Origin: Podarcis muralis
Lineage: Eukaryota
Assembly: GCF_964188315.1 (NCBI RefSeq)
Contig: NC_135667.1
Location: 12,152,001-12,216,000, forward strand
DNA: 64,000 nucleotides
Reading direction: 5' to 3'
Below, piece after piece: positions 23,074 through 61,291 of the stretch (the stretch's first letter is position 1; each line of letters begins with the position of its first letter). Made by a program: the position numbers and the translations under genes. The notes under the pieces were generated by a model that saw only the letters and a list, made by a program, of their open reading frames with translations, did no database searches and had not been told where the DNA came from.

Positions 23074-23205
23074 NNNNNNNNNNNNNNNNNNNNNNNNNNN
23101 NNNNNNNNNNNNNNNNNNNNNNNNNNNNNNNNNNNNNNNNNNNNNNNNNNNNNNNNNNNNNNNNNNNNNNNNNNNNNNNNNNNNNNNNNNNNNNNNNNNN
23201 NNNNN
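23074..23205. other. Assembly gap
   Basis: Run of N. Confidence 1.
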
Positions 23206-37783: not shown

Positions 37784-40700
37784 ATGGAAGTTCTTTTTCT
37801 CGTTCCTGTGCTAGGTATGTCTTGCTACTTTCTGATAACCCCAGCCTCTGGTCCTGCTCTGCTCTGTTCTGTCCACTTACCATATCTGAATAGAGAAGCA
37901 TTGGCAAGAATGAGCGATAACAGCAGCAACAAACACACCAGCTGCCTCAGAGGAAAAGGGTGTGGGCAGTGGTGCCTTGTATAGTTGCATGCTTAAAACT
38001 CATCAGTGTGGCCAGGCGAGAGTGTGTGTGTGTAATGTAAATTGATGTATAATTAATCTGAGCTACTGATTTGTGATGCATTTTGTACTTATTTCAGGAA
38101 TGAAATGTTATTGTTGTTTTTTTGTTTTTCACCACTACAATGATTTATTTTCTTTAATGTTGGCTGTATATTATTTTTTTTGGCGAACAAATACATTGCC
38201 CAAGACATGATCTTAAGCAGTGGTCTTCAACTAGTCCAGAAAGAAAAATCCGAGCCAGGAACATGGGGCCAGCTTTCACATGTTCATTTCTTATTTATAC
38301 TTTGTAGTATCCTCTCTTTGATTTCTGGAGGTTTTCTCTTGAATTAACCTGTGGCTTATATAGAGCAAGAGGAAAAGTCATTGTCCGCATTTATGCTTGC
38401 ATTATGTTGTCACTTACGGTCATCTCAACTTTCACAATCTTCCTGTTTCCTCTTCCTCTCCACTCATACTGTTTTCTACATTCTCTCTACCTTCTCAAAC
38501 TTTTCTGTACTTCAGCCTTCTACTTCAATTCACCTGCTCATTGTTGCCTTTTTATCTCCCTCTTCTTCCTTTGCTCACTTTCTTCCATCTTGTGTCATCT
38601 TCAATGCTGCCTTTAATTCACCTCTCTGTCATTTAGGTCCTCTCCTAATATCAGCTTTCTTGAAATAAAAATGCACAGGGTTTCTGGGAAAGTTCATCAC
38701 CCTCAGCACCCAATACAGACGCCAGTTGCTATTTGTTGCTCCTTGGTTGACGTTTGAGGAAACTTCCCAGATTCTGCTATACTGAAGCATCATATTCTTG
38801 TAGTTCCATAACAAACAAACAAAACGCTTTTCTTTCTTTTTTTTTCTTTTTCTATATAATGCCATTTTATAATTCTTTTTAAAAGCAACTAAATAAAACT
38901 AACCTTCATTCCAAATCAACACTGAAATATTAAAGATGCAAACTTACTTGAGAACAGGTCCAATTAAAATAAATGGGCCTTACTTCTGAGTAGACATGCA
39001 TAGGATTTGTATGTTAATTAAATTATGATTAACTAAGGTTCTCTCTCCCTGGTCAGCTGCATTTCCTTTCCCTTTCCTGCAGGTTTTGTTTTCTTCTTGA
39101 CATCTTCTGTGGCTGCCTTTTTCCCCCCTTTCTCACAATTGCCGGTCTGCCTGCCCTCTCCATGTATCAACTTTCCTGAACTCAGATGTACAGAAAATAA
39201 ATCTGATTTTTTCTCTCTCTCAGTACCCTCAGAACGTAATACAGGCAGAAGTGGAGAGGGGAGGAGATATAAAAACCTCCACAGGACTGAACATAGGTAG
39301 AGCTCAGACATAGCTACACAAACCAACAAACACATTTCATCTTATCCAGTATTTTAGGCATGTTTGCCCATTAAGTTCAGCTAGAATCCCCACACCATTT
39401 TCCTCCAGCCCAATCCTTCTGTTCCAAGCAAATAGAAGTCATTGAATAGCAGTCCTTACTGGTGAATAAACCCTCACATCTCTAGACTCGGGGCTGCCTG
39501 GATTCATTCCTCCCTGAGTGTTTCACCACCAACAGCTGCAGCCATTCCAGCGCTTCTTTTCTATGCAGAGGAGTCCAGTGGCTTCCAGGCTTCACAACAC
39601 AACCAGCTTTATGTGATTCAGTGAGGCTGCAATAGTCAGGTAAATAGCCTCTTCTCAAGCCAGGCAGGGTGTTTCCACTATGTGGGAGCATGGCTGGGCT
39701 GGTGCGAAATGAGGAGGGAACTCTCTCACATAACATACCTTCCAAATGCCCTGGAAAAAGAGACACATCCCGTAGTTTCTCACACAACCTCTGCGGCCAT
39801 TTTGGGTGTCGTGATCTGTCATGCTCTCACCTCAAAGAAACACTTTTCCCAGGGCCACGACCCCACACAGCTCCCCAAAACTCATGCTTTGGAGGCACTG
39901 TACAATATCTCACGAGGCGCATGTCATGTGAGTCTCCCAGGAACAGGTCCTGGAAGATGCACATTCCAGTTTTGCATCGGAAGAAGTTGGAAGGTAAGAC
40001 ATAAGAAAGAGGAATAAAAAACTGCAGCCTCCAGGTTGGACTGAAGGGTTTGCGTGGTGATGGCAGTTTTTCTGTGACCCGCCTGGCATGGCCATGCAGC
40101 CAACCTGTGGGTACAGACCCATTGGCTGAAGACCGAAGCCTAAGGTCTTCTTGAAGCTATGCAGGTCTGGGGTCTGGTCAATGCTTGGATGGGAGCCTAC
40201 CTAATACATATGCTCCCTTGAGGCAAATATAACATGTAAATAATCTTCAGATCAAATCAGTTCAAACTTCCAGGCCTATTTAACCAGTTCCATCCCTCCT
40301 TTTTTATTTCTCTCTTTCAGTTTTCCTGCATCTTGTTCCGCAGCCAGCGTCATCTGCAGGTAACATTCCAACTTCTTCCCAGTGAGTTGTTTATGTGGAG
40401 AAGACCAGAGTGTCTGTAGAGAAGAATCCTTGTCTCTTTTGTGCTGTTGTTTAGCAACCCAGCACCCCCTCCAGCTGCTTTGTGGTTCCCCCAAGTATGC
40501 TAGTAACTTCACTCTTATACATGGGTACTTTCCAGGAGCAAACTGTACCACACTTAACAAATCCCAGTGCCACCTCCTTTTGCATCACTACTGCGTATTA
40601 TAAAAGCGAAGTCACCCTCCAAGTGTGAATCCTTATGTAGGTAAAATGAAACATATACCCATGTTTAGGAGCAAAGTTCCTGGCATGCTTGGGGAAAACT

Positions 40701-43700
40701 GCAAGGATTGCAGAACTACAAATATATATATATTTAGGAGGGGAGGGGGTGGAATGAAAAGTCCTCAAACAGAGCTGGGCTGAATAAGACAGTTTGCAGA
40801 AACACAGAGAATAAATTTTAAAAGTATGTGGGGTGGGATGGAGTAACCTGGAACAGGGCAAGGCTAAAACAGAGCACCCCACACTGTGACAGTTCGTTTC
40901 AGGTTCCACTTGTTTGCCTGCCACTGAGATCCCTCTGCTTTTCTTCCAGGATCTCTCCCTCCCCCCAAACTCTCGGTACAGACAAATTATCCTGAATACT
41001 TTGAAGGCGAGAGGGTTGTGCTCATATGCTCAGCTTTCCTAAACAGGACGGTGGAGGGATACAGGTTCTTCAATCAGGATGGGCAACAAATTCTCAAAAT
41101 GGCTGCCGACCCTTATCAAAAGGGCAGACTGTTTTTTAGGGCTGAAATGAGCAAGATGGGAAATTACAGCTGTGATTACTGGATGGGGAAAGCTAATACA
41201 GAGGTCACATCTGCCCGAAGCAACTCCATCTCCCTACAAGTGAAAGGTAGGTTTCTAGTTCCTGGGACGTTGGTGGCCTGTTCCAATGAAAATTTAAGGG
41301 ATTGACTGTCCAATTCATTTTCTTCTCCTCTGCCACTTGCTACATCTGTCACCCCCAATTTGATGTCCTCTGACACCCCTCTTGATGACTGACAAGGGCC
41401 CATGCCCTCCCAGTTTTATCATTCTTTCTTTTTTAAGTGGGTTGTTTGGTTGGGGTGTCCTCATTGCTAGCCGGTGGCCTGTTTCTTTAGTTTGTGCTTT
41501 ATTTGTTTTGGTACATATGTAGATATTTTGCATGGCTTTTTGGGGGGTTATAGAGTTTCTAGACATTGTTCCTCCCCTGGGAAATGTGATTTGCTGTTGT
41601 TGTTGTTGCTCATGACTAAGAAATTGTCATTTCCCAATGTGAGCCTGGACCCAGAAAGTCTGGGGACCCCAGTGTTAGAAATCTACAGCCTTGCTCATGG
41701 CGGAGTAAAGGTAAAGGTAAAGGTACCCCTGACCATTAGGTCCAGTCGCGGACAACTCTGGGGTTGTGCGCTCATCTCGCTCTATAGGCCGAGGGAGCCG
41801 GCATTTGTCCGCAGACAGCTTCTGGGTCATGAGGCCAGCATGACTAAGCTGCTTCTGGAGAACCAGAGCAGTGCACGAAAACACCATTTACATTCCTGCC
41901 AGAGAGGTACCTATTTATCTACTGGCACTTGACATGCGTTTGAACTGCTAGGAGGGCAAGAGCTGGGACTGAACAATGGGAGCTCACCCCGTCGTGGGGA
42001 TTTGAACTGCTGACCTTCCGATCGGCAAGCCCTACCTAGGCTTTGTGGTTTAGACCACAGCGCCATCCTCATCCCAGGGCGGGGTAGGGGTGGATAACTA
42101 TGCAGAATACAAATGACATGATTAGCAAATCACAGCTTTAAAATAAAGAACAAAATAAATGCCTTGGGTGGGAGGTGGCAGCCATCAGCTTAATCTTTCC
42201 CTCCCTAGAAACAATCTCAGCAAAAATCAGGCAAACACACATATAAGGTGCTACTGGAAGGAATTTTTTTTGTTTTGACTATGGCAGACCAACACAGCTA
42301 CCTATCTGTAACACATATACGCTATTAGCTTTCGGGTGGGGGAACCTCTCACTGTTATGTAACACACTATACGGAGGACCCTTTCTGTACTTTTGTAGCC
42401 CCGAAAGTGTAGAATGAACAAACGTATTGCAAATGCACTCATTTGCTGCAATAATAATAATAATAATAACCTTTTGGGAAAATTATAGCTTCAGGTGGCT
42501 ATTTTCAGCAGAAAAAAACAGTGCAGAAGTGTTGTGCCTGCAAGTTGCCCGCATCAATATGATGAAGGGGAGGAAGCTCTGCTGTATATATATCTGCTTC
42601 TCTAACCGGAACAATCTCTCAACAGCTCAATGGCCTTCTGCACACTGAGTATGACTTAGTTGAACATCAGCCCTTTTTTATGTTTTCAATTTTTTTACTG
42701 TAGAGAAGAGAAACCGAGTTTGCAGGAAGTTTCCCAAAGAAAAAATGTTTAGGCAATTACTTTCATTCTTAGTTATCAGTTTTGGGGAAAAGAAACTAAA
42801 CTTGTTGGGAAAATGTGGAAAGGAGCAGCAAAACCACTAAGTGGCAGCAAAGGCTAGGTTATGCAACCTGAACGCTCCTTTTGACTCTTTTCCTGCTAAG
42901 CTTCAAATTCAAATTTCCGGGTTGTTTCCAACTATTTAATGAGCCCAAATGAGCCGTGTTAATTAGCTATTCTGAGTAGTACTAGCGTTGAATAAAACCC
43001 TCAGATCCCTTTCATCGTATGTACAAAGTTGGATAGGAACATTTTAGTGCAACTCTGAGACAGGAGTGAGAACATGTTGGGAATGTGGGCTTGGGAGAAC
43101 ACATCTTTGTTTGGAGTTCTATCCTGGCATGTGATACCCAAAATCCTCCTGACACAGTGCATGTGGAAGGCGTTGTGGCCTTCTGCTGACAGCTGTAAGT
43201 TGCCCATGGCTCACTTCCAAAAAGCACCAAGCCTGATAGACCTTTATCTTGATATTGGATGCTAGCATCACGTTCTCCCATACCCTTTTGGAGAGGTGAG
43301 CCATTGCCAATACACTGATTATGGTGGAACCCAGCACTGTCTACCATCTCAAGTGTGTGGTCACCAGTGCTGATACATGGAGTGCTGGCGACATCCTGAC
43401 CCAAGACATTGGGCTTTATCTGCGTCTTTAGGCACACTTTGTCGTAATCTATGTATTTTTGTGCTTGGGACGCGGATGGCGCTGTGGGTAAAACTGCAGT
43501 GTCTAGGACTTGCCGATCATATGGTCGGCGGTTCGAATCCCCGCGGCGGGGTGAGCTCCCGTCGTTCAGTCCCAGCTCCTGCCCACCTAGCAGTTCGAAA
43601 GCACCCTTAAGTGCAAGTAGATAAATAGGGACCGCTTTATAGCGGGAAGGTAAACGGCGTTTCCGTGAGCTGCGCTGGTGCAGGCTCGCCAGAGCAGCGT

Positions 43701-45855
43701 TGTCACACTAGCCACGTGACCCGGAAGTGTCCTCGGACGGCGCTGGCTCCTGGCCTCTAGAGTGAGATGAGCGCACAACCCCAGAGTCGGACACGACTGG
43801 CCTTCGGGCAGGGGTACCTTTACCTTTACCTTTATGTATTTTTGTACACATCTCTTGGCTACAGAACCGCATTTCAAAATTCAGAGAAGTGTGGCTGTGT
43901 TTTAGTTTTTCTGTCAAATCAGTTAGGTTCACCTTTATTTTTATTTATTTTTTAAAATGTTTTTATTAGCAATTTCAACATAACAACATATCAAAACATA
44001 TCATATTCATTATTTCCCCCTCCCCCCCCGAGACTTACCTCAGCTCCTCTCTCTGATTTCTCAACCCATATTATTCTCTGCATGTTATAAAATTATACAA
44101 ATCCTCACATTATCTATCTACCATGTTATCAATCAATAAATTTGTGTATGTTTATTCAAAACCTGCCAAGGAGTCCAATTCATTTTGTTGTCTTTTTAAG
44201 TAATTTGTGACAAGTTCCCATTCTTCTTTAAAGTCACAGTTGTCCTTATCTCACAGTTTGTATGTCAGTTTGGCCAGTTCTGCATAGTTCATAATTCAGA
44301 GAAGTGTGGCTGTGTTTTAGTTTTTCTGCCATTTTAGAAAGTGCAAATCAGCCAGGTTCGCCTTTAAATGGGAACTAAATCACATTTCTCCTCCATCCTT
44401 CAATTATTTCATTGCAAGCCTAAAATCTGATGTCTAAAAATGCTTCCCTGCCCTCACCCTATCTCTCTCTCTTCCCACCCTCTCTCTCCACCCACCCAAC
44501 CATTGCAAGCATACTTCAGGGTGGAGGAGTTTAGCTAGCCTCTGTCTCTGTGTTACACGAAGCAATCTCAACCCTGGGTGTTTATCTTTCTTTCCCAGAA
44601 GCCCCAGAAGCCCCCTCCCTCTCTTTAAACCCAAGCCTCCTTGAGTACAACCTGGGAGATAATGTCAGCCTTGTGTGCTCAGCTCCGCCTGAAAGAAAGG
44701 AAGTCAAGGAGTTCCAGTTCTATAGCGACAAAGAGGAAATATCAGTTGTGCCTCCATATGGCAACGTCTACACTCACAACATGAGCATCATGGAACCCAA
44801 AGATGTGGGAAGCTTCATGTGTGGTTACGTAGTGGACCTCTCTGGAAGAAAAGTTATTTCAAAGAAGAGTAATTCTGTCACCATTGCTCAAACNNNNNNN
44901 NNNNNNNNNNNNNNNNNNNNNNNNNNNNNNNNNNNNNNNNNNNNNNNNNNNNNNNNNNNNNNNNNNNNNNNNNNNNNNNNNNNNNNNNNNNNNNNNNNNN
45001 NNNNNNNNNNNNNNNNNNNNNNNNNNNNNNNNNNNNNNNNNNNNNCCTTTAGCCAATAAAGGCTCTCAGGGCTGCTGGGGGGGGGGAATCAATATTAAGA
45101 TGGGCCCTGCTCTCAGACTTACAATCCAAAAATAAAAAGAGACAACATGCAAAGAAAAAGGGAGTCAGAGGGAGAAGGAAAATACAAGCTGAAGTAAAGG
45201 TTCTTAAATTTGCAGATCTTATTGCGCAGTTAACAAAAGGAATTCTTCACTGGTGGCTCCTTGTTGTCTTCTCATTGATAAAGAACATGCTTTGTTTTGA
45301 AGCACTCTTCCTCCATAGATCACATGTGAGAGCAGAGTCAATGCCCAGCCAGGAGGGTAGGGCAGCTTCTACCACAGACATGCTGCTTGAGTTGCATCTG
45401 ACAATCCCCACTGGAAATGGTTCCTTCCATCACAGATGCACAAACCTTTGACTGGATTTTTCCAGCTGGCCGTGGGGGAAGCAGGGAGTGGGGCAATGCT
45501 ATCTCTCTTGCAAACCTATCTTCCATAGATTTGGTTGCGAGATCAGGAATTGATAAGAAAGGTAAATCACATGGCGAGATTCTGTAGAAATAACACTCGG
45601 AGAGTCTGTCAAAATGACTAAGAAGCATTAGGTGGTCCAAACCAATATCCACAAACTCTTATCTGATTCTGAATAAGAGAACCCAACTTCGGTGAAATGT
45701 GGCATCTTTTCATTACACTCTGTAACCAGAAACTCTTTTTCTTAGTCAACGGGAACTTAGACAACTTTTCCAGCTGGAAACGGATGGCGGCCATTGGTGG
45801 CTCCTTCTTCACCATCAACAGCCTCATCTTCCTCATCTCCCATTTGTGTTTTTAA
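37784..45855 (+). CDS. Two-Ig-domain, tail-less FcR/LRC-like receptor, copy 1 (~252 aa)
   Basis: Exons 37784-37814 (MEVLFLVPVL), 40321-40359 (39-nt mini-exon VFLHLVPQPASSA), 40950-41246 (Ig D1), 44599-~44895 (Ig D2, last bases in N gap), 45761(or 45746)-45855 (hydrophobic segment plus TAA). All junctions phase 1; visible splice sites are GT-AG and mirrored in copy 2. Confidence 0.82.
41704..42075 (-). mobile_element. Sauria SINE
   Basis: Reverse-complement (ACCTTT)n tail and GGGATGAGGATGGCGCTGTGG 5' end. Confidence 0.9.
43040..43400 (-). mobile_element. Degenerate RTE-clade LINE fragment
   Basis: Translation HNAFHMHCVRRILGITCQDRTPNKDVFSQAHIPNMFSLLSQ resembles the RTE post-RT region. Confidence 0.7.
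43467..43832 (+). mobile_element. Sauria SINE, full length
   Basis: GGGACGCGG..GGCGCTGTGG 5' end, GGTTCGAATCC B box, (ACCTTT)n tail, 13-bp TSD TATGTATTTTTGT at 43450-43462 and 43833-43845. Confidence 0.95.
43938..44292 (-). mobile_element. L1 LINE 3' fragment
   Basis: Minus-strand translation MNYAELAKLT...FKEEWE resembles the squamate L1 ORF2 C-terminus; A-rich tail at ~43938-43960. Confidence 0.7.
44894..45045. other. Assembly gap
   Basis: Run of N covering the D2 splice donor of Ig gene copy 1. Confidence 1.
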
Positions 45856-46288
45856 ACCACAGGTAAGTGAAAAGAGTAAACATTTCCTTTCGAACATGTA
45901 CTTTGGAGCACGTGTGGCCCAATACATTTTTTGGGTTTAAGGGTTTAAGATGATTCAGTTTCACTGAAACCCACTGTGGTGTTAGATGTGTGATGGTGAG
46001 GCTTCCGAGACTTGAGCCTTCCATCATGCAAAGCAGAGATGAGAAACCGTCGCTGGACTATGTCCCCTACCATCCCAGATTATTGGCTTTGCTAGCTGTT
46101 GAAGTCCAGCAACATCTGGGTGGCAACAGGTTATTCATCCCTGATTGAGCCCAGAGTTGTCTTCCTTGATTGGCCATGACATTCCAGATCACTTTCTCAC
46201 CACCTGTGGAGGCTGCGGGGAGTGGGGGCATTGCCTCTGAGGCAAAGGATCAGGATCATGACATAGGGATAGTTATATCTAAACCATT

Positions 46289-46632
46289 GGGACGTGGGTG
46301 GTGCTGTGGGTTAAACCACAGAGCCTAGGACTTGCCAATCAGAAGGTCGCGGTTCGAATCCCCGCGATGGGGTGAGCTCCCGTTTCTCGGTCCCTGCTCC
46401 TGCCCACCTAGCAGTTCGAAAGCATTTCAAAGTGCAAGTAGATAAATAGGTACCGCTCCGGTGGGAAGGTAAACGGCATTTCCGTGTGCTGTTCTGGTTC
46501 ACCAGAAGCGGCTTAGTCCTGCTGGCCACATGACCCGGAAGCTGTACGCCAGCTCCCTCGGCCAATAAAGCAAGATGAGCACCGCAACCCCAGAGTTGGT
46601 CACGACCTAATGGTCAGGGGTCCCTTTACCTT
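46289..46632 (+). mobile_element. Sauria SINE
   Basis: Same hallmarks as the other copies; 5' TSD TATATCTAAACCA at 46274-46286, with the 3' TSD split by the LINE below. Confidence 0.92.
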
Positions 46633-46640
46633 TATATCTA

Positions 46641-49600
46641 CCTTTATATTCACCAGTGGACACCGGAGTGGGTCTTCTACCCCAGGAGAAGAGTTATGTG
46701 GCCTCCACTCCCCTAGCAAAGAACAATGACCAACCGAAAAGTGGCATGACACCACCAGAAGAGATCGAACTCATTGCCTCCTTTGCTGATTTACCAGTGG
46801 TGGAACAAAAAGAAATGATTAATAGACTGGAATCGCTTAAAACCCAACTTATTAGGAAGCTCAGCACCAGAATACTCACGTACAGCGAACATGACTCCCT
46901 AGAAGAACCAGATCATATGGATCTCTCAATAGCTAATGCTAAATGTATGTCGGCAATGGAGGATAAGATACAACCCCAAGAAGCAACTACCAGTCCTTCC
47001 CTCCAAGCAGAACAATCCTCTGTGCTCTTAATAGATTTACATGGCCGTCCATTGAAAAACATACCTGAAGAAAGTAGCACACAACAGGAAAAATCCCCTT
47101 CTACACATTCATCGATGCCAGACCTGGAACCTTCATATAGCACTGACCAATCAAGAGAAGAGGTGCCTTTGCAAACCCTCCCAAATAGCCCTCTCGCCCA
47201 GCCTTACGGATTCAACAGCAAGACCAGTGACGGAACTGATTGAAGACCCGACAGGCCACATAAATCAAGTAGCCCAAAAGACCAGTAGCAGGCTACAGAG
47301 AGACCAAACTCCTGACGAGATAGCTGGTCCATCCCGGGTGGCCCACCAAACTCTTTTGGAAAAGGGGTCCGCCCCTGTTCAAAGTCCTACTCCTAGTAGA
47401 TCGAGGGGCCAAGCTCAACAGTCAGATGACCTTGTAAATCCCACTCAGCCTTTACGAGAGGTTTTTCAACAGAGGAAGATAACTGATTTCTTTATTGGCT
47501 CCCCTCTTCCCGCATTAAAGTTGAGCCAATTTTCCGAATGACAGTCAATTGGAGGAACGGGGAAACCCCAGCCTTCAATATTAAGTTGGAACATTGCTGG
47601 TTGGAAAAGTAAAAAATTAGATCCAGAATTCCAAAAATATATTAATTCCTTTCTTATCATACTATTACAAGAAACTTGGGTGGAGGAGGAAATTGAGTTA
47701 AATGGCTTTGAGTTTATATGTCTGCCTGCTAGCCCGTCAACGAATGGTGGCCGCCCTAAAGGTGGCCTTACAATTGGTATCTCCCTCAAACTTTGGGCTA
47801 AACTTTCACTAGTGCATGCATTTCTGCCTTATGCTATTACCGGACTGATCTCTGGTGGAAACTTCTCTTTATTGGTTACAAATGTCTATTTCCCTCCGGG
47901 AGGGTTAGCAGCTGATCTTACTTCTAGATGGGAATCCCTAGAGGATTTTTTACTTTCTTGTTATCTTAAGTATCCCAATGTTCCCTCCATTACTGGAGGC
48001 GATTTTAACGCTCGGATAGCATCAAGTCGGGAGGCTCTTAAAAAGTCTAAGTGGTGGGTTGACCCCGGCGTTCAAACCAACAATCTAGTATACACCCCCA
48101 CTAGAATATCAAAGGATGTAAAAGTCAACAAGGCGGGAGTGATGCTCTATCAGATGACTCTACGCCTTAATTTAATTATATTAAATGGCAGGTGTCCTCC
48201 AGACATACCAGGAGAGTTCACCCACCTGGGGTTAAAATCAAACAGTGTTCTCAACTATGTATTGGTTTCCCGGGATCTATTCTTGAATGTCACCTCTTTT
48301 AAAATTGATAATGCCCAACTTAGTGACCATCTTCCCCTGACAACCAAGTTATGTGTTGACTGGCAGTTGCTCAACCGCTCCCATCCAATCCCGGTGATTG
48401 TGGAGTCGTCCACTAAAATAAAGGGGACTAGATGGTCCCCTGCCCTCGCTCATAGATATATGGATTTTATCCGAGAAAAGTTTTCTGGTGATCAGATGGA
48501 CGTAGGAATAGTCCTGCGTGATCCTATTACCTGTATGAATTGTTTTTCTCGCCTGATAGAAGTTTTAACTCACTTTTTTACTTCTACAACCTATGGAGCT
48601 AAAAACGATTATTTTAAATTTGGCACCCCTTGGTTCAACTCTGCTTGCAAACTAGCCAGACTCCATCTACATACAATATATAATGACTATAAACTTTCCG
48701 GTGCTCCAGCCTTACCTCCATCTTATTCCCTGGCTAAAAAAGCATACAAACAGGCCCAGAAATCGGCCAAACGGGAGTGGCACTTAAATCGTTGGCAGAC
48801 TATAATTTCTGCCTCAAAATCTCATAACTCCCGGAAATTTTGGTCCTTAATAAAGGGAAGAAACACGAAATATCCCTTAACGATGATCCCGGCCCCTACA
48901 TGGGAGCATTTCTTGAGAAAATATTTCTCAGTGGCAGAAGCTCCGGCCACTCATTGGAGACCTTCTAATCCCCTTCCCGTCTGGCCTAATACCGACCCTG
49001 CTGAAATCCTAGAATTGATAGCTGAGCTGAAAACTGGTAAGGCCCCTGGGCCAGATTTGGTCCCTGTTGAGGCTATAAAGCTTCATTCTGCATGGTGGGC
49101 AGGGATTTTAGCTAAAACGTTCGACGCAATAAATGCCACGGGCTTAATACCAGGAACGTGGAAGGAGGCCATTATAATTCCTATCTACAAAAAAGGCCCT
49201 CCCGGTGACCCAGGGAATTATCGGAATATCAGTCTGCTATCGTCCATTGGGAAAATATATGCCCGTTTTTTGCTGGCAAGGCTGATGAAGTGGTCAGTTG
49301 AGGCTGACCTGATTGGACATGAGCAAGCTGGATTTAGATTAAACCGATCCACAACAGACCAGGCAATTATTCTTTATCACTTAGCCCGGAAATACTCGAC
49401 GCCTCGACGGGGCCAACTCTGCGGACCTTTCATAGATCTGAAAGCTGCGTTTGATAGTATTCCGAGGAAATTACTATGGGATAAACTTGCCTGTTGGGGA
49501 ATAGATAGAAGGCTATTGTGGCTTATCTCCCAACTTCATGCCGGGTCCGTGGCCAGGGTGAGATTATCCCCTGCTGGAGATCTGACTAACCCAGTGCCAG

Positions 49601-51173
49601 TAAATAAGGGTGTACGCCAGGGTTGTATTTTAGCGCCTCTTCTTTTTAACTTATTTATCAGTGATATGAGGAACCCATTAGCCGTCTCACAAAAATTTAT
49701 CCACTCCCCTCGTATAGCAGATTACCGCTGTCCTTTACTTCTCTATGCAGATGATGCAGTACTACTCTCTTACTCCAGAGTGGGTTTAAGGAGGGCACTA
49801 AAGATTTTTGCGACATATTGCCATTCTAATCATCTGTCTATCAACCACACCAAGTCCAAAGTACTGATATTTTCAAGGAGTCGAAAACTTTATTCATGGA
49901 AACTGGAGGGCACGAAATATCGAACAAGTACATAAATTTAAATATTTAGGAATTTATTTTCAATATAATTTAGGGTGGAAAGCGCACGCTGAATATCTTC
50001 AAAACAAGACAAAAGCCCTATCACACTCCCTCCTCCGTTTTTTCTATTCTGAGGGGACCTTATTCATCCCTGCGGCCTTGAAAGTGTATAGCATCAAAGT
50101 GATGGCCACAATGGCCTATGCTGCACCTTTATGGGCTGCCTTTGCAAATCTCTCACCTTTAGAGTCACTTCAAAGCCAATTCTTACGCCGACTTCTAAAA
50201 TTACCAACATGCGTAAGTAATGCGGCTATCCGCTTAGAAATGAAGATCCCCTCAGTGGAGTTAGTTATATGGAAGAGAGTTTTGATTTATTGGATATCCC
50301 TATGGCATAAACTCCCGAACCACTATCTCATTCAATGCATGTGGCGAGATGACTTCACAAATTTGTGGTCAGGAAAAATCCATGCCAAATTGCTGTCCTA
50401 TGAGATCTCGCCCACTGAATTGCTCAAACTGGATCTAAATGTGGCAAAAAGGTGTATAAATCAAAGGCTGGATGATGTGGAGCTATACCAAAATTTCGTA
50501 GCTGGTGGTGGAGTCTGCTCGCCGCTAAATTTCGCATAACCCCTATCTACCGCACTCCGTCCTACTTAACATCGCTTACGGCCGCGTCTCACCGATATGC
50601 CTTCATTAGAGCTAGGTTTAATGTCTTTCCAACAAATGTGCTGAGACATAGATTCACTAAGGGCCAAGTCCCTTCAATGTGTGCGTGTGAAATGAAAACA
50701 TCTGAATCTCTACATCATGTTATGTTTATCTGCCCTTTGTACAGTTCAGCCCGTGCTAGTATACTAAACTCCATAATCCAGCCTATGGCTGACAAATCAG
50801 TAGACCTACAGCTGGCCTGGGTTCTTCAAGATGTGGATCCTTATATTACCCTACAGGTTGCTAAATTCCTAACTGCCGTCCTCTCGTACAAGAGACGGAA
50901 TGGAATGTTAGCTGATTATTGATAGTTATAAGAATTTTCTATAATGACATCAGATATTGATTTTAGTGTAGTGCCTAAATTTTTTAAATCTTAATCTTAA
51001 ACTTTTCTTATGAATGGCTAATATCTGTCCTTGTGAGTTGAGAACTGTGTTATACTACTTGTGGCTTGTACGAGTCCGCTGTTTTATTTGATTTTATTTG
51101 TTTTGATTTGTTTTGTTGTGTTGTGTTTCATGATGGGCGTAAAGCCGAATAAACATTTTGATTGATTGATTGA
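46641..51173 (+). mobile_element. RTEX-like non-LTR retrotransposon, probably 5'-truncated in ORF1, frameshifted
   Basis: ORF1 pieces 46656-47243 and 47227-47541. ORF2 has APE (SWNIAGW, LQETW, GDFNAR, SDH), RT (DLKAAFD, GVRQGCILAP, LLYADD) and C-terminal C-x-C...H...C. 3' AATAAA plus (ATTG)n tail; 8-bp TSD TATATCTA. The clade call is from recalled motif style, not a search. Confidence 0.8.
47542..50922 (+). pseudogene. ORF2 (APE-RT-Zn knuckle) of the RTEX-like LINE, two frameshifts
   Basis: Open 47542-49935; frameshift near 49915 (continues IEQVHKFKYLG in another frame); second frameshift near 50530-50560; ends at 50922. Confidence 0.85.
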
Positions 51174-52077: not shown

Positions 52078-52229
52078 NNNNNNNNNNNNNNNNNNNNNNN
52101 NNNNNNNNNNNNNNNNNNNNNNNNNNNNNNNNNNNNNNNNNNNNNNNNNNNNNNNNNNNNNNNNNNNNNNNNNNNNNNNNNNNNNNNNNNNNNNNNNNNN
52201 NNNNNNNNNNNNNNNNNNNNNNNNNNNNN
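52078..52229. other. Assembly gap
   Basis: Run of N between (ATT)n runs. Confidence 1.
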
Positions 52230-52311
52230 TGCAATAAAACTAGACAGAGTGTCACTATGGGAAATGAGCATGCTCTCTATCAATCAAACACATCTCTTTC
52301 TGGATTCTTTC

Positions 52312-52358
<47 letters not shown>

Positions 52359-53138
52359 ATTTGTATACTACCCTTCATCAAAGATCCCAGGGTGGTTTAC
52401 AACGCATACTAATAAATACAGATAGTATTCTGCAATCAGAGACATATTCCTGGCTGCTATTTGGTGCTCCACTCTTCACTCCCCTTTTTCATTGTGTATG
52501 AAAAAGTTTAAAAAGTAATGCCTGTCCTGCCTTCATCACACTCAGTGCTGCTAGCACTCTGCAGAAGTTCACTTTCCACCAAACACTACGTTGTCTGTCT
52601 CACTATTGTCTGCTATACACACACACACTCACTCAAGAAAAATCTGGGAAAATGTGTCATCTGACTGGGGGTTGTGTTCTGGACTGAAACAAGCAAGTTT
52701 GGAAGTGTCAGACTGAGTTAGTCCTCTATCAAAAATGGATCTCCCACTGGATTGATTGGAACTAAGGCAGCAGGCAGGTGGAGCGCGGCTAACAGCAAGG
52801 TAAGTTTGGTGAGGCAGTGACCCATTTGCCCCAATGCACCAGCCTCCACTGGCTCCAATTCTCTCCTGCATTTCTGCTGGCTGGAGCAGAGCATGTGTTG
52901 AGCACACGAACAAAACAGGAATTATCAACGCAGTTAGCAGGTCAAGTGCTGACTCCTCTAGTCTGGCCAGACCTATTTCCATTTTCTATTTTAGGCAGCA
53001 AAGTCCCTCAGTCCAATGGCTCTTTCCCCAATAATGACTGCATTTCCCCTCTGGGCGATTATGCAAATATGGGCTTCACTGATGTTCCTCCGCCCTCCTG
53101 TAAAGACACTTTAAGGGTCTGCCTTGGAGAGGAAGGTG

Positions 53139-53146
53139 ATATAAAA
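53139..53146 (+). promoter_or_regulatory. Candidate TATA box of Ig receptor copy 2
   Basis: ATATAAAA ~60 bp upstream of ATG 53206; degenerate (CATATTCAAA) at the matching site of copy 1. Confidence 0.45.
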
Positions 53147-53205
53147 ACTGGCGATACCAAGTTTCCAAGGAGGTGCAATCCAGGTGGAGAGAGATCCTTC
53201 TCAAC

Positions 53206-56200
53206 ATGGAGGTTATTCTTCTGGTTCCCATGCTAGGTATGTTGCTACTTTCTTTCTCCCCCAACCTCTTCTTCTACCACTCCTTTCTCCTGGGTTTTAA
53301 TTCCTGCTTTGATCCATCATAAAAGAATCATCTGGATAAATTTTTAAACTGGCTTCAGGGCTAGCAATTGCTGAGAACACGCTCTGACCCATACGAGCCA
53401 ACTCCTTGGAGGTGAGGGGTCTTTGGACCCCCCCCAACAAAATATTTGAGGGCGCCACCCCCCAAGTTGATGGGCATTGCCATTCAAGTGCTGTGTGTGC
53501 ACAATATCATGGCGCCAAGTGCCACTACTGGCCAGTTGGCACTGTGCCCAGCGGAATGCCCCCTAAATTCCTGTTCCCTAAATTGGCCATTACGGCAGCA
53601 GGAGGATGATCCAGCCTGCTAGAGGCCAGTTCACAAATGAGATACAGTGCCAGCCAGCCCGAAGAGGGCAAACAGACTTCTCAGTTGCATCCTCACTAGC
53701 GATAGCTGAGAATTTAAATTCAGTTCATGTTAATGGGTGAACCGACCTAATTCACATGTTCCAAAATGAGACATGAAACAGAAACGCAACCGTCCTTCAA
53801 AATTCACATTTTCCAAATTTTGAAGGGCAGTTCTGCAGCCAAGCTACGCGTGCAAAAGTACATGCGTGCAATATGCATGTAAGCATTCTTATGAATGCAT
53901 GTATATAAAAATATACGTGGAGGGGGGAATCATGCAAAGTGCATCATATTATTGAAAATCGTTTTCCACAAAAAGGCATATTAAGTGAATTGGATACAGA
54001 AATTGCTGCATATTAAGAGAAACTAAAATACTGCTGAAATTTCATGAGGATTTTTTTTGGGGCGGGGAGCTAGAAACAGATGTGGAAATGTGTGAAGCAG
54101 AACTTAACAGCTGAGTAATGAAAAGCAGCTAGTAACCACAAATGGTCATCTCTCATCCTGGACTATGTCATGGTGTGTATGCAAATATACAAGTCTGTTA
54201 TTTCGACCCTCGTCATCCTTTCTGTCAGAATAATAAACACACAGAGAAAGAGAGGGGGGCTATGGGGCCTCTTACACTTGACATTCTCTAGGGCTCAGCA
54301 TACCTGGTCCTCCTCTGCCTTGCTATCACTGCCAGCGTTCACCCACTACCTCTGTACAAGCAAGCAACAACAATAGTGAGGGATTGGCAGCGGCGCCTCC
54401 CACCTGCCTGTGCTTCTCCTCTGGGTGGTAGTCTGGATGGGGCTCAGAGGCAACTGGAATGGGCAGCAGTGATTTGGGCAGAGGGAGGATGAGAGCCCAC
54501 TGAGAGACACCCTCTTCCCATACAGGAAGAGACAGAGAGTCCATAAGGGGGCGCTGTGGGAGCTTTGCTCATCCCTCCTAAAGAAAACCGAGAGCCTGGC
54601 TAGAGGTCTCTTCTTTTTTGGAACATCAGAGCAAAAGTGTGTAAGGATTGCCTTGGTGGATAAGACTCGGGTATGTGCTTTAACACTCTTTAATTCGCAA
54701 CACCATAGCCCATATGGTGCAGCCAAAGCCTGCAAAGTTGAACTTCTCAGTCGGACCATTCCTGTATTATGTCCAGTCACTTCAATCCTTTGGAGAGGCC
54801 CTCTTAGTAGTACCTTACGCTCACGAGGTTCATCTTACATGCGCTGAGAAAAGGGCATCTGAGTGTGGTAGCACCTGTCCTTTCGAAGTGCCAGAAAACA
54901 TCAGGCAGACACCTCCAACATCGTCAAAACTCGTCCAGCTTTCCTGGGGGGCTGAGAATGATCCGGCATACTTGACATTCAATTTATCGGACCTACTGAT
55001 TTGTGATGTGTTTTGTACTTATTTCAAGAATGTGATTTTTGTTCATTTTATGCTCTTCACCATAATGATATCCCCCCCCCCCCCCGTAATGTTGACAACA
55101 TAGTTTTGTTTTGTAGGGGCTAAATAATGCATAGGGATTTGATGCTGCAGCCTTCCTGAAGCTATGCAGGTCTCAGAGTCCGGTCAGTGCTTGGATGGGA
55201 GCCTACCAATGAACCTTACATGTGCTCCCTTGAGATAAATATAACATGTAAATAATCTTCAGATCAAATCAGTTCAGACTTCCAGGCCTATTTAACATGC
55301 CTCATCCTTCTTTTTTATTTCTCTCTTTCAGTTTTCCTGCATGTTTTTCTACAGCCAGCATCATCGGCAGGTAACATTCCAACATCTCCACAATGAGTTG
55401 TTGATGTGGAAAAGACAAGAGTGTCTCTAGAGAAGAACACTTTTCTTTTGTTCAACTCTTAGAGCCAACTTCCTCAACCTGGTGCCCTCCAGCTGTTTTA
55501 GACTACAACTTCCATTATCCTCTGCTGATCATACAGCATAAAAGTAGTGAATTTTGACATTTTTATTGCAGAAATCACACTGTGAGGAAAATCAAATTCC
55601 ACTTGTCAAATTTGACCCACAAGGCCGATACTGATAAAAATCTGGCCTGTGACGCCAGAAAGTTTCCCACTGACCCCTGGAGCAGGACTTGTGATATCCA
55701 GGTTCAAATCCCTTCTCCAGCCATGGAGCTCAGTGCGTGATGTTGGGCCAATCACTAACAGACCCTCCAAATGTCCCTATTTTCCAGATATGTCCCTGAT
55801 TCAGAGAAGCCGTCCTGGTTTCTGATTTGATCCTGGAATGTCCCACTTTTCCTTAGGATGTCCCTATTTTCATTGGAGAAATGTTGTGGGGTATGCACTA
55901 ACTCTCAGCCTGACCTACTTTACAAGGTTGTTGTGAGGTGAGGAAAAGTGTGGTGTATGCTCAGTTGGTTTACCACAGTTTCCCCTCTTGTATCCTGGAT
56001 GAGTACATTCAGCGAGTGCTTATAGGGGATATTCCAAAATATGACTGTCTGCACCTGTAGTCTGAAGTGGTACAGTCCCGAATCCCACCACCTCAGTCTT
56101 CCTCCTCATTTTTGTGCAATGTTGCTCCAACTTTCCATGAAGAGACTGTAGAAAGCTTCTAATTCCCAGGATGGCTTATGTATCATAACAGAATTCTATA

Positions 56201-59196
56201 TGCTGACAGTGATCTCACTCTCCACGTGTGGGTCCTAATACAGCGAAAATGATACCATCAGGGCAGGAAAGGGAAGTTACCAGCAGGCATTGGGGGAACC
56301 TCACGTTTGCAGAAGTATAATAAAATATTTCAGGAATAGCATGAGGGGGAGAAATGGAATGGAGCATTCTGTAAGGGATCTGGTCTGTATCTCATGGTCT
56401 GCAGAATTTTTTAGAAGCATGTGGGGGTGGGGTGGAGTAACTTGGAAGAGAACAAGGCTGAAACAGAGCACCTCACACACTGTGACAATTCTTTTCAGGT
56501 TCCCCTTCTGTGCCTGCCACTGAGATCCCTATGCTTTTCTTCCAGGGTCTCTCCAACCCCCCAAACTCTTGGTACAGCCAAATTATCCCGAATACTTTGA
56601 AGGCGAGAGGGTTGTACTCATATGCTCAACTTCCCCAAATGAGACGGTGGAGGGATACAGGTTCTTCAATCAGGACGGGCAACAGATTCTCAAAATGGCT
56701 GCCGACCCTTATCAAAAGGGCAAACTGGTTTTTAGGGCTGAAACGAACAACACAGGAAATTACAGCTGTGGTTCCTGGATGGGGAAAGCTGACACAGAGG
56801 TCACATCTGCCCGAAGCAACTCCATCTCTCTACAAGTGAAGGGTAGGTTTCTAGTCCCTAGGACATCAGTGGTTCTGTGCCAGAAAATCCCTTGGGGCAT
56901 ATAATAGTTTCTGACTTCTACTTTCATCAGGGAAGCAGTACTAGGGAAAGTTTTGGATCTGCATGGTAGATTCAACCTATATTCAGAGGAGGTGCTCTGT
57001 AGGGCCAGCCTATCCATGAGGCAATGTGAGGTGACTCCCTCAGGCAGCAGAATCTACAGGGGCAGCAGATCTGGCCTCCCAAGAATGTGTCAGCCACTGC
57101 TGCCTCCACAATGACAGCTGTGGTGTGCTCCTTGCGGGCTGGATCTGCCCCCTACTTGGCTGCTGCCTCCCAATGCCAACTGTACAGCAGTCTCTTGGTG
57201 AATAGGAGGTGCTGTTCCCATCCATGTTCCCTGTGTAGATCTTCACTAGGGCTAGGGAAATGGACACCATTTTGTGGTTTGCCTCAGGTGCCAAATTGTC
57301 TTGGGCCAGCCTGGATGCTCTGCTATAGCCATTGCATTAACTCTGATCAGCAGAACCGGGCCAGAACTTCCTGGACTACAGCAGCAAATCCTAACCACAC
57401 CAGGTGGCAGAAAATACCAATTTATGCAGTCTCTATGCTTGTTTTGACAGTTCCCTGTCTGCAAAGTTATTTGAGAGGCCTGTTTTTGTGCACGCCGTTA
57501 ACTGAAGGTAGATGGATTATCTGGCTGCAGAATTGCATTGCAAATTTCAAAGGGTGTGAGAGGTTCGGTTAGCATGTGGTTTCAGAAAATGCAACTGGAT
57601 CAGATTTCTTCCCCAACCTTTGCGTCCTTTCACCTTGTCAAAAATTAACCTAAAAACAGACATCTGAATCTGCATCCTCTCTCAATTTCTCTCTTCCCAC
57701 CCAACCATTGCAAGCATATTTCAGGATAGAGGAGTTAGTATAGCTGCTGGCTCTGTTACATAAAGGAATCTCAACCTTGAGTGTTTATCTTTCTTTCCCA
57801 GAAGCCCCGGAAGCCCCAGCCCTCTCTTTGAACCCCAACCTCATCAAAAACAACCTGGGAGATTCGGTCAGCCTTGTGTGCTCAGCTCCACCTGAAACGA
57901 AGAATCTCAAGGAGTTCCAGTTTTATGGCGACTGGATTAGCGTCTCAGCTGTGGCTTCACACGGCAACATCTACATCTACAACATGAGCATCACGAAGCT
58001 CAAGAATGTGGGACTCTTCAGGTGTGGATATGTAGTGCATCTTTCTGGACGGAAAGTTATTTCGAAGAAGAGTAACCCTGTCACTGTCGTTGGACCAGGT
58101 AATCTTTGGGTTTGTTTATTTATTTATGGCATTTACACCCTTTTGCCAATAAACACTCTCAGAGCTGCTTGGAAGGCGGGGGACAGTATTAATACCCTCT
58201 CTGCCCTCAGGCTTACCTATTTAAAAGGGGAGAGGAGTGGGAGGGAGAAGGGAAAAACAAGCTTAAGCAAACGCTCCTAATGTTGCAGCTCTTATAATGT
58301 AGTTTGCCCAATCTACAAGGACTTAAGAGCAGCCTTGTTCAAAAATTTAAATATCCCAGGTGAGAAGTGTTTCATTAGCTGTTTATTAGGGGACAGGTCC
58401 CCCTACACCTCTGAAAAAGTGCTCATTTTGCATTTAGGGTGACAGTTTTAAGGAGAAAAGTTTGTGGGACAGGTAAGCTAAATTCTTCAGGGGAGCAAAA
58501 TCTTATCTGACAGAATGCTTGCCTTTAATAGTTATTTTAACTGTGCAGTGTATTTTATTCTTCGTAATGCATTTGTTTTCTGTATTTTTTCATAATGGCT
58601 TTTACTACACAGATAAATAATAATATTCATATTCATATAATGCATTTACCCTCCTCCATTACTTATGTCAGTGGGGGTTTCGGCCTCCCAAAAAACAATC
58701 TACCCTCCCCAGATCAGACCCAGGAGCAGAGCAGGTGACCATGTTCCATCCAGGAGGACGGAGTAGCTCCTACCAAATCGTAATTCCTCATAAACGCTTC
58801 CCTTCTGCTGCTTGAATTTCTCAGGCAGTCTTTGGGGAAAGCATGCATAATGCTATCTCTCATGCTCATGTAATTCTCAGGTTTTGAGATCAGGATTAGA
58901 TAGGAACAATGAATCACACAGGGCAATTCGATAACAATCTCACTGATAGGAGTCTGCCAAAATGACTAATAGGCATTCTGAGGCCCAAACCGGAATTACG
59001 AAGCCTTATCTGATTCTGAAAAAATGGCACCCGACCTACTCAGCAAAATGTGGCAACTTTTCATTGTACTCTGTAGCCAACAGCTCTTTCCCCCCTTGTC
59101 TACTTAGGCACCAGATGGGAACGGATGTTGGCTATTGGCGGGTCCTTCTTCACCATCAACAGCTTCATCTTCCTCATCTCCCACTATTGTTTTTAA
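53206..59196 (+). CDS. Two-Ig-domain, tail-less FcR/LRC-like receptor, copy 2 (250 aa)
   Basis: Exons 53206-53236, 55332-55370 (39 nt), 56546-56842 (D1), 57802-58098 (D2), 59108-59196 (GTRWERMLAIGGSFFTINSFIFLISHYCF-stop). Total 753 nt in frame, canonical splice sites. Predicted 3' UTR exon from 60214; AATAAA at 60628. Confidence 0.87.
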
Positions 59197-59727
59197 ACCA
59201 CAGGTATGGTAAGTAATGCACTTTCTGCAGAAAATCTCCATGGATTAAAGGATTTCCTTTCCCCCCACACTTTAGGAAGAGTACTTTGGGACAGGTGTGG
59301 CCCAAAACATTTTTTATGGTTGGGGTGGGTGGGGGAGAGAATGGCGTCACTGCCACCCCAGTCCAAACACACACACACACATACGTGGCAACAGTCATTC
59401 AGATCTTTGTAACATCCAGATTATATCACTGTAGCACGTGCTACTGAGTCTGGAAACTGCACTCTGGCTTCCAGGTGTCTGGAACAGTTGCTTCAGAACG
59501 TAGGAGCCAGATTGTTATCTGATAGGAAGGATACAGCGTGGCGTTGTCTTGTCTCCCGTGGCCGCCTCTTCATTTCCAGGGCCATTTCAGAGTGGCGCGG
59601 TCTTGATGCGGAGAGCCCTGAAGCAGGTGCGAGGAACCTGGAATCCCTCCAGATCTAGTTGAACTCCATCTGTCACCAACCCCCAGCCAGCATGGCCAGT
59701 TGTTAGGGCTGATGAAACCCAGTAATA

Positions 59728-59968
59728 CAGTCAAACCTTGGTTGTCAAACGTAATCTGTTCTGGAAGCCCATAGGGCTTCCGAAAAGTTCGACAACTGAG
59801 GCGCGGCTTCCAGTTGCTTGCAGGAGCTTCCTGCACTCAAGCGGAAGCTGCGTCAGACGTTCGGCTTCCAAAAAACGTTCAAAAAACGGAGCATTTACTT
59901 CCGGGATTTTGGCGTTTGGGAGCCAAACTGCTCCAAATTGGAGGTGTTCAGGATCCAAGGTTTGGCTG
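59728..59968. mobile_element. Tc1/mariner-Tigger-type MITE
   Basis: TA|CAGTCAAACC...GGTTTGGCTG|TA. Confidence 0.8.
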
Positions 59969-61291
59969 TAGCTGGAAAACCAGAGGCTCCAAACTAGCAC
60001 CCCCCCTCTCTCTCTCTATCTCACTTCAAGTTATTATTTTTGCTACTGTATGTAGTCAAAATCTGTCTGAATTGGTCCGATTCTGAACTCATTACAAATG
60101 TCACGGGATTTGGAGTCGGGGAAGGAAAGGGTCTTCCTGGTTTGAATTTTTGCTCTGATGTTATCATCCAGGAAAGTCTCTCATCACTTGCTATTTTTAA
60201 AAATCGTTTTCAGGTCTCCTCTGCAGAGGACTGGAATGTCCCCTTTGCCTGGCTGATTGCAGTTCTGCCCTTATCAGCTTCTCTTCAATCAGATTGCGAT
60301 ATATTGCTCCATTCATCAAATGAACTCGCTTCCCCCACAAATCACATTTCACAGAGGGAAAACCCGGATCCTCCCATCATGAAAAGAGATTGTTTTGATT
60401 GTGTTTCATTTTATGGACATTATTACATTTGTAAACACATATTACCGATTCCATTAACTTGAGCAAAACAATTTTAATATTCTTTTAAAAAAGAGAGAGA
60501 AAGGAAAAATCAACAGCACCACAGTAGTTTCAATTAAAATAGATTTTGATCTTTGTTACAGGAAACTAGCATGCTCTCTTTCAATCAAACCCTTCTTTTT
60601 AATGAATTATTTCTAAATCTGCATACTAATAAATACAGTTTGTATTCCACAATCAGAGATACATTCCTGGCTGCCACTGGTGATCCAGTTTTTAACCCCT
60701 TCCCATCACAAGGTGGGTGAAAGAGTGTAAAGTAAACAGACAGATGTCCCACACTTTTGTCAGGATTCCTATTGGGTTCCTCTCTGCCCCTGCAAATCCT
60801 TCACAAGCCAAGGCTGGTGTGTGCCTAAGGGAGAAACTGCTCTGGGCCACTGTATGACTTGCAATGCTGGACACCAAGTCATGTGTTGAAAGTTGTCTCC
60901 AACAAAGGAGTGCTCTGATTAGACCCATTTAATGCAATGGGCTTACATTAGTCATGTTCCTTCTTTGAAATGGGTCTATTCTGAGTCATGGACTTCAGCT
61001 AATGCTGAGTCACAGTGTTTAAACCAGCTGTTTCAGTGCTTTCGCAGAATGATATGGGCTAGAGAATGCCTCTCTGTGACTGAATTAACCTTTGAGGTAG
61101 GCAAATGCCTTCCCCCCACACACACCTTTTCTTGACTTAGCTTAAAGATGCAGTCCATCTTTCTTAAAAACAACTATTTCAAATGCAGGGCCAACCCAAG
61201 ACATTCGGCTGATTGAGGCAAAGGATAAGATGACGCCTCTGTCTCCAGTAGCTGACTGGCGATAGTTTTTTATATTTTATTTTTTCATTTA

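Follow-up and report, generated by a model that had tools for sequence, protein, structure and literature searches.

Receptors of the Fc receptor (FcR) and leukocyte receptor complex (LRC) families that lack a cytoplasmic tail dock the FcRgamma adaptor through polar or charged residues of their membrane segment (PMC2413239). Guselnikov et al. distinguished two docking modules, one of the form NxxR, which is used by LRC-type receptors and XFLs, and one of the form (M/L)Fxx(D/N)TxL, which is used by the classical FcRs (PMC2413239). In FcR and FCRL genes the leader is split over two exons, the second of which has 21 bp (the 30/21 rule), and LITRs and XFLs form large, rapidly diversifying arrays with membrane modules other than the one described below (PMC2413239). 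The Fc and leukocyte receptors of reptiles are almost unknown, and a 2014 survey of Fc receptors reported only PIGR for the green anole (PMC4016189). Here, we analyze a stretch of 64,000 nucleotides of Podarcis muralis (RefSeq assembly GCF_964188315.1, contig NC_135667.1, positions 12,152,001 to 12,216,000 of the forward strand), which we call the window. It carries a collinear pair of paralogous genes on the + strand, at 37.8-45.9 kb (copy 1) and 53.2-59.2 kb (copy 2). We consider it likely that these are functional tandem genes for type I membrane glycoproteins, in which a cleaved split leader is followed by two C2-type immunoglobulin (Ig) domains, a short stalk, and a single membrane helix that ends the protein without a cytoplasmic tail. 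On the same reading, they are lacertid duplicates of a low-copy gene found across sauropsids, which makes a separate branch of the FcR/FCRL-LRC superfamily and would couple to an adaptor with an immunoreceptor tyrosine-based activation motif (ITAM).

Border reading and scripted splicing give five coding exons per copy, with all junctions in phase 1: two leader exons, one exon for each Ig domain (D1 and D2), and a membrane exon with the stop codon. In copy 1, the first leader exon (37784..37814) begins with ATG, has 31 coding nt and a GT donor, and is homologous to the RNA-confirmed first exon of copy 2. The second leader exon (40321..40359, 39 nt, phase 1) has AG/GT borders and agrees with the predicted proteins of Zootoca vivipara and Podarcis lilfordi. 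It is followed by the D1 exon (40950..41246, 297 nt; Pfam Ig_2 6.5e-7), the D2 exon (44599..44893; Pfam Ig_2 4e-8), of which 295 nt are readable and 2 nt are expected inside an assembly gap, and the exon of the stalk and membrane segment (45746..45855), which ends with TAA at 45853-45855 and agrees with the C-terminus of the Zootoca protein. The exons of copy 2 are found at 53206..53236 (leader 1, 31 nt), 55332..55370 (leader 2, 39 nt), 56546..56842 (D1, 297 nt; Pfam Ig_2 7.9e-8), 57802..58098 (D2, 297 nt; Pfam Ig_2 2.7e-5), and 59108..59196 (membrane segment, with TAA at 59194-59196). The internal exons of both copies have AG/GT borders, the sole unread border being the D2 donor of copy 1, which falls in the gap. 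An alternative acceptor within leader exon 2 (16 nt) was rejected since it breaks the frame and is contradicted by an RNA joint.

The predicted products have 257 aa in copy 1, one residue being undefined, and 250 aa in copy 2. Their cysteines at 50/98 and 149/197 make a Cys-x47-Cys spacing in both domains, and the motifs YRFF and FQFY fall on predicted C strands (strands 60-64 and 158-165 of the structural model). There are five N-glycosylation sequons in copy 1 and four in copy 2, and in both proteins the hydrophobic C-terminus is immediately followed by TAA. Pfam recognizes only the generic Ig_2 domain in the two copies, and no more specific Ig family. A preliminary description of this region, made from the letters alone, had proposed a pair of complete paralogous genes, each with a split leader, two Ig domains, and a hydrophobic segment at the end, and had given the 297-nt domain exons, the cysteine spacing, the two motifs, and several sequons. 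We found every one of these elements in its proposed place, and border reading, splicing, and the structural model confirmed the details.

The same description had inferred the end of the copy 1 D2 exon across a gap, which agrees with our results. The assembly gap at 44894..45045 removes the 2 nt expected at the exon's end together with its donor site and the first part of the intron. Its flanks are collinear and in the same orientation on the orthologues of Lacerta agilis (L003) and Zootoca vivipara (L001), which have no more than 87 and 66 nt, respectively, between the aligned flanks. Hence, the flanks are continuous and no exon was lost in the gap. The codon at the gap reads NTC and was left undefined; if the D2 exon is 297 nt long, like that of copy 2 and of the orthologues, the membrane exon is in frame up to the conserved stop.

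The transcription of copy 2 was studied by aligning runs of Podarcis muralis, namely three of contigs, from two studies, and one of raw reads, to window positions 53204-59203. The four joints 53236>55332, 55370>56546, 56842>57802, and 58098>59108 were recovered, all GT..AG after the stated shifts, each in one to three of the contig runs and none in the raw-read run. All the junctions of the copy 2 model are therefore present in contigs of the three runs. Depth lies on the exons, and most intron bins are at zero. One contig of 439 nt links D1, D2, and the membrane exon, which fixes the frame of the membrane helix and of the stop. The other frame of the membrane exon, which reads as an open Ser/Pro-rich stalk through to a CACAG/GT donor, was rejected for copy 2 since the joint 58098>59108 sets the frame with helix and stop. 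For copy 1, a fraction of 0.73-0.81 of the sampled words of the D1 exon is present in the RNA-type runs of the same study, a level equal to that of the DNA runs, and this copy is probably transcribed as well. Two intronic regions of copy 2 (55600-56000 in intron 2 and 57204-57403 in intron 3) have very high word depth in the RNA contig runs with many loose ends, which is typical of dispersed repeats transcribed elsewhere and not of this gene.

Searches with the D2 reading frame identified RefSeq predictions that follow our exon model in Podarcis muralis, Lacerta agilis, Zootoca, and numerous further species, all listed as uncharacterized and 250-256 aa long. The genes had been described as unannotated-looking, which is not the case since RefSeq already predicts their orthologues as uncharacterized LOC entries. 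The Podarcis muralis entry LOC114582364 is 96% identical to copy 2 over the full length, and the Zootoca vivipara protein is 89% identical to copy 1. The predicted proteins of Lacerta agilis and Hemicordylus capensis are alike in leader, domains, and C-terminus; that of Podarcis lilfordi is alike in the leader and Ig domains and differs in its predicted C-terminus. Profile searches reached amphisbaenians, anguimorphs, iguanians, skinks, geckos, snakes, birds (35-38% identity), and turtles, and the identity of orthologues across Squamata, birds, and turtles is 35-66%. An exhaustive HMMER search gave 1322 matches at E <= 0.001 and 135 at E <= 1e-30. Named samples from the best 150 matches include multi-Ig or paired forms in turtles and alligators, a caecilian, and "FCRL5-like" proteins of fish; none of the 30 looked up among these 150 was mammalian. 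When the membrane region of a snake orthologue was used in a word-based search, only snakes were returned, which is uninformative on mammals. Relatives with the same membrane module occur in crocodilians, turtles, and a caecilian. The automatic names of the relatives vary (IGSF1-like, alpha-1B-glycoprotein-like, FCRL5), showing that automatic annotation fails to place the family. These results overturn the idea of a squamate-specific family; only the tandem duplication is specific to lacertids. The proposal of a lineage-specific activating family thus loses its first half, whereas an activating design remains plausible.

We built a maximum-likelihood tree of 33 two-Ig members of the family. 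Turtles, birds, and squamates each form a starred clade, as do geckos, snakes, and iguanians within the squamates, and the gene tree tracks the species tree. Lacertids form a further starred clade that holds both window copies, where copy 1 is joined by Zootoca and P. lilfordi, and P. muralis is grouped with copy 2. Lacerta agilis has two such genes in identical order, and Rhineura and Hemicordylus have duplicates of their own. The gene is thus old and low-copy, and its tandem duplication took place in lacertids. In Zootoca vivipara (L001, 22086-27145), the region 3' of the copy-1 orthologue has only leader-like and membrane-exon-like pieces (near 22086, 24815, and 27060), with no D1 or D2 exon between them. 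Loss of the Ig exons from this second copy is one possible reason, and a misassembly of the region is another.

The two paralogues did not diverge evenly. Their synonymous divergence (dS) is 0.15 in D1 versus 0.56 in D2, and their amino-acid identity is 84% in D1 and 67% in D2. Besides, the D1 exon of copy 2 in Lacerta agilis is equally close to both window copies. This suggests gene conversion confined to the D1 exon, with D2 left to diverge. The ratio of non-synonymous to synonymous divergence (dN/dS) is below 1 throughout, at 0.18-0.25 for D2 of the copy-1 orthologues and 0.4-0.8 otherwise (0.6-0.8 in the copy-2 orthologues), and the open reading frames (ORFs) are intact in several species, which speaks for functional constraint and against pseudogenes.

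The membrane segment (W-x-R...GGSFFTIN-G/S-LIF) is nearly invariant. We aligned 23 C-termini from lizards, snakes, birds, turtles, alligator, and caecilian, and found that G, F, F, N, and I are invariant within the consensus W-x-R-x-L-A-V-G-G-S-F-F-T-I-N-G-L-I-F-L-I-S-H, the N being followed by G or S across the family. The upstream W-x-R is present in 46 of the 54 proteins with the module, and 25 of the 54, alligator and turtle forms included, have their stop right after the helix. Geckos, snakes, and birds have 5-15 mostly basic residues after the helix, with no tyrosine motif. A few turtle proteins with the Asn-type module have longer tails with tyrosine motifs, and other turtle relatives, whose ectodomains are similar, combine an uncharged helix with a long tail in which the Y-x-x-L/V motif occurs several times (both kinds are in the turtle set P0063, P0104, P0153, P0036). 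Given these turtle tails and uncharged helices, the pattern is that of a paired family of activating and inhibitory receptors, expanded in turtles, in which the window genes would be of the activating type. A conserved cysteine near the C-terminus (H-x-C-F) is a possible palmitoylation site.

In both window copies a good splice donor follows 7 nt past the stop (CACAG/GTAAG at 45856-45864 in copy 1, CACAG/GTATG at 59197-59205 in copy 2, with GT at 59204), and in geckos, snakes, and birds the reading frame runs on past the lacertid stop position into the short basic tail. An old stop placed directly before a retained exon border would thus seem to account for the absence of a tail.

With its Arg at the helix entry and its F-F-x-x-N core, the module echoes both published docking modules and is literally neither of them. 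The window genes have the hallmark of receptors that use ITAM adaptors: there is no signalling tail in either copy, and the Arg and Asn of the membrane helix are conserved over sauropsids. Such a near-invariant membrane segment suggests pairing with an ITAM adaptor, and the comparison of sequences makes an activating, adaptor-dependent design plausible. We propose that the ectodomain would bind a conserved ligand and that, in the absence of a tail, the signal would pass via the membrane helix, with its Arg at the outer end and its mid-membrane Asn in GGSFFTIN(G/S)LIF. The helix would pair with an Asp-bearing dimer of an ITAM adaptor, for which FcRgamma is the first candidate, as in the activating FcR and LRC receptors. 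The low copy number and the species-tree-like history argue for a conserved ligand rather than for polymorphic ligands akin to those of the major histocompatibility complex or for ligands of pathogens. Since the paralogues diverge mainly in D2, they may differ in the fine specificity for the ligand.

The likeness to FcR/FCRL and to LILR/CHIR-type families, which had been noticed from the sequence, was borne out by profile and structure searches, with matches to both sides. The best match of the family profile to the sequences of the PDB is FCRL5 (8e-35, a value that sums many domains). The profile of D1 gives 31.7 bits with domain 4 of FCRL5, about 35 with the whole chain of FcgammaRII (best stretch in D2), 34.6 with LILRB2 (best stretch in D1), and about 28 with FcepsilonRI alpha (best stretch in D1). 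The D2 profile has weaker matches, to KIR3DL1 (26.3, best stretch in D0), CHIR-AB1 (26.2), OSCAR (24.6), FcepsilonRI alpha (19.6), domain D6 of PirB (17.2), and the best FCRL5 domain (15.4). The AlphaFold (AF2) model, with a mean predicted local distance difference test score of 85.6, has two beta-sandwich domains and one long helix at 224-249. When this model was searched with Foldseek, LILRB4, NKp46, FCRL1, GPVI, OSCAR, TARM1, FcgammaRII/III, and FcepsilonRI alpha were all matched at 1e-11 to 1e-9, the top matches being LRC receptors with the FcR matches within about 100-fold in E-value. Foldseek is unable to split FcR from LRC in this case, as its TM-scores of 0.3-0.4 are dominated by the hinge angle. 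Look-alikes in the ESM Atlas belong to generic Ig clusters and are uninformative.

Both copies have leader exons of 31 and 39 nt, which differ from the 21-bp second exon of the FcR/FCRL genes. The second leader exon of LRC genes has 36 bp, again different from the 39 nt seen here. The genes thus lack the second-exon length of either family, their membrane module fits neither published one literally, and we refrain from placing them in either. They belong to the FcR/LRC superfamily, with a D1 that seems equidistant from both families and a D2 that is slightly LRC-like. In the 10-35 kb around the genes sampled, the flanks hold neither genes of the FcR locus nor Ig-receptor genes of the LRC cluster. 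Compared with the LILR, KIR, and CHIR arrays and their fast turnover, the family has a low copy number and evolves along the species tree. It resembles the teleost LITRs and Xenopus XFLs in its mixture of FcR-like and LRC-like domains and in the activating and inhibitory pairing of the turtle relatives, and its next-best representatives outside sauropsids are "FCRL5-like" multi-Ig proteins of fish and a caecilian. Unlike these large arrays, it is present in few copies in squamates and birds, and its membrane module is its own.

Could the genes be true orthologues of the classical FcR/FCRL, i.e., a reptile receptor for the Fc of IgY or IgM with a membrane module ancestral to (M/L)Fxx(D/N)TxL? 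They share with FCRL5, FCRL4, FcgammaRII/III, and FcepsilonRI alpha the split leader, the coding of each C2-type Ig domain by a single phase-1 exon, and the two-Ig ectodomain, and FcgammaRIII and FcepsilonRI alpha are likewise tail-less with a polar residue in mid-membrane. The best PDB sequence matches are FCRL5 and FCRL4, D2 of FcgammaRII matches D1, the C-strand motif Y-R-F-F/Y is common to the repeated domains 4-8 of FCRL5, and the F-F-x-x-N core is similar to F-x-x-(D/N). With its 31 nt, the first leader exon also comes close to the "30" of the FCRL rule (PMC2413239). However, the second leader exon is not of 21 nt, the literal membrane motif is absent from all 54 proteins, D2 scores better on LRC than on FcR domains, the C-strand Trp typical of Fc-binding domains is replaced, and the neighbours are V2R and LTB4R-like genes instead of those of the FcR locus. 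We therefore regard such orthology as unlikely. A sauropsid counterpart of the LRC receptors with conserved ligands (OSCAR, GPVI, NKp46), which couple to FcRgamma and have two Ig domains and an Arg where the helix enters the membrane, seems quite improbable to us. This idea draws on the likeness to the activating LRC receptors (LILRA, NKp46, GPVI, OSCAR, FcalphaRI, and the chicken CHIR-A/AB), which also have two Ig domains, F/Y in place of the C-strand Trp, an Arg towards the outer side of the helix, and little or no tail. The D2 profile matches of OSCAR, CHIR-AB1, and KIR point the same way, as do the W-x-R in 46 of 54 proteins, and the low copy number and species-like tree that fit a conserved ligand. 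The top Foldseek matches (LILRB4, NKp46, GPVI, OSCAR, TARM1) have a root-mean-square deviation of 9-10 A versus about 16 A for FcgammaR, but this value depends on the predicted hinge angle. Yet the second leader exon differs in length, the Asn of NxxR is missing, its place being taken by W-x-R and the invariant mid-membrane Asn, there is no special affinity to any one of these receptors, with all matches at about 25-35 bits, and the sampled flanks (V2R, LTB4R-like, and a GH31 glucosidase in a bird) are not Ig-receptor genes of the LRC cluster. One might also imagine a conserved single-lineage sauropsid receptor, absent or unrecognisable in mammals, whose Arg and Asn module is a third, undescribed mode of docking ITAM adaptors or the ancestor of the classical FcR module, and whose ligand is the Fc of IgY or IgM. 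The chances of this combination appear low, but if true it would be the missing non-LRC Fc receptor of reptiles and birds.

Several observations weigh against a tandem pair of functional, adaptor-coupled receptors. The published module (M/L)Fxx(D/N)TxL was found in 0 of the 54 family proteins, with only the F and N of the core F-F-T-I-N-(G/S)-L-I in agreement, and NxxR in just 3 of the 54. A profile of the membrane segment alone, compared with the PDB sequences, gave chance matches to the photosystem II protein T only, and no link to FcepsilonRI alpha or to other full-length receptors. The RNA joints cover copy 2 only, one codon of copy 1 sits in a gap, and the runs are labelled "RNA?" (their kind was guessed), with no tissue of origin given. 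Finally, a tail-less C-terminal hydrophobic stretch could also be the signal for a glycosylphosphatidylinositol (GPI) anchor, making these proteins GPI-anchored or otherwise non-signalling, as in human FcgammaRIIIB. The proteins do stop after about 23 hydrophobic residues without basic stop-transfer residues, and small residues (G-P-G, or A-Q-T-x-N-G) lie ahead of a short polar spacer. Unlike cleaved GPI signals, however, the segment is among the best-conserved parts of the protein over roughly 300 million years, with its invariant G, F, F, N, and I. In geckos, snakes, birds, and turtles it also continues into basic cytoplasmic residues, and AF2 predicts a single long helix at 224-249, all of which makes a GPI anchor rather improbable. 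We find it very improbable that the copies are decaying duplicates or pseudogenes without a protein function. This would fit the fairly high dN/dS of 0.6-0.8 in the copy-2 orthologues and a second Zootoca copy that seems to be without both Ig exons, but the frames and splice sites are intact in both window copies, copy 2 is correctly spliced in RNA, and the ORF is kept in dozens of species.

We found no description of the family in the literature on reptile homologues of FcR, FCRL, LRC, or LITR, nor for the alligator GenBank entry. While many RefSeq annotations already contain predictions of these genes, and receptors of this general kind are well known, the family itself is uncharacterized. 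The low copy number, the species-tree history from geckos to birds and turtles, and the near-invariant helix point to a conserved ligand and a conserved signalling partner. This makes the pair of functional, adaptor-coupled receptors that we favor a tractable candidate to study the adaptor coupling of activating receptors outside mammals and the relationship of the FcR and LRC families. The signalling mechanism is a reasonable proposal, and our results currently amount to a well-supported gene annotation together with a hypothesis on mechanism, not to the demonstration of a new mechanism.

The duplicated units were compared by blastn, which revealed eleven collinear blocks from 37055/52657 to 52471/60687. 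Their identity is 75-89% and they are centered on exons, most of the intron sequence being no longer alignable. A candidate poly(A) signal, AATAAA, is found on the + strand in copy 1 (52411..52416) and in copy 2 (60628..60633), in both cases inside a block common to the two copies. The sharing of this signal in the last blocks fits the earlier suggestion that the duplication takes in the 3' untranslated region. No third copy was found within the window by tblastn with the family proteins. Unit 1 is longer than unit 2 partly because a long interspersed nuclear element (LINE) is inserted on the + strand in the 3' region of copy 1, downstream of the stop (46656..50922). This element has an ORF1-like ORF of 195 aa, a reverse-transcriptase ORF of 751 aa (47680-49935, Pfam RVT_1), and further ORF fragments; the first two together span 46656..49935. 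It explains much of the difference in length between the units. The runs of N in the window are at 23074-23205, 44894-45045, and 52078-52229. The last of these gaps is in the AT-rich spacer between the units and touches no exon.

The upstream neighbours, within 10-35 kb, are vomeronasal type-2 receptor (V2R; class C G-protein-coupled receptor) genes in the window and in Zootoca, and a read-through model of Anolis implies the same. In the window, they form a cluster of three genes or gene pieces at 4255-34526. Exons for 7tm_3 lie at 13478-14374 (-), 22040-22654 (-), and 33726-34526 (+); the second of them is truncated and lies about 400 nt from the N gap at 23074. Those for ANF_receptor lie at 4255-5103 (-), 16780-17646 (-), and 29306-30316 (+). 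The downstream neighbour in Lacerta agilis is an LTB4R-like G-protein-coupled receptor, and the neighbour in a shearwater is a maltase-like GH31 (glucosidase) gene. At the start of the window, an uninterrupted LINE ORF2 of 918 aa (18-2774, +) has endonuclease and reverse-transcriptase domains and may be a young, intact copy of a retrotransposon.

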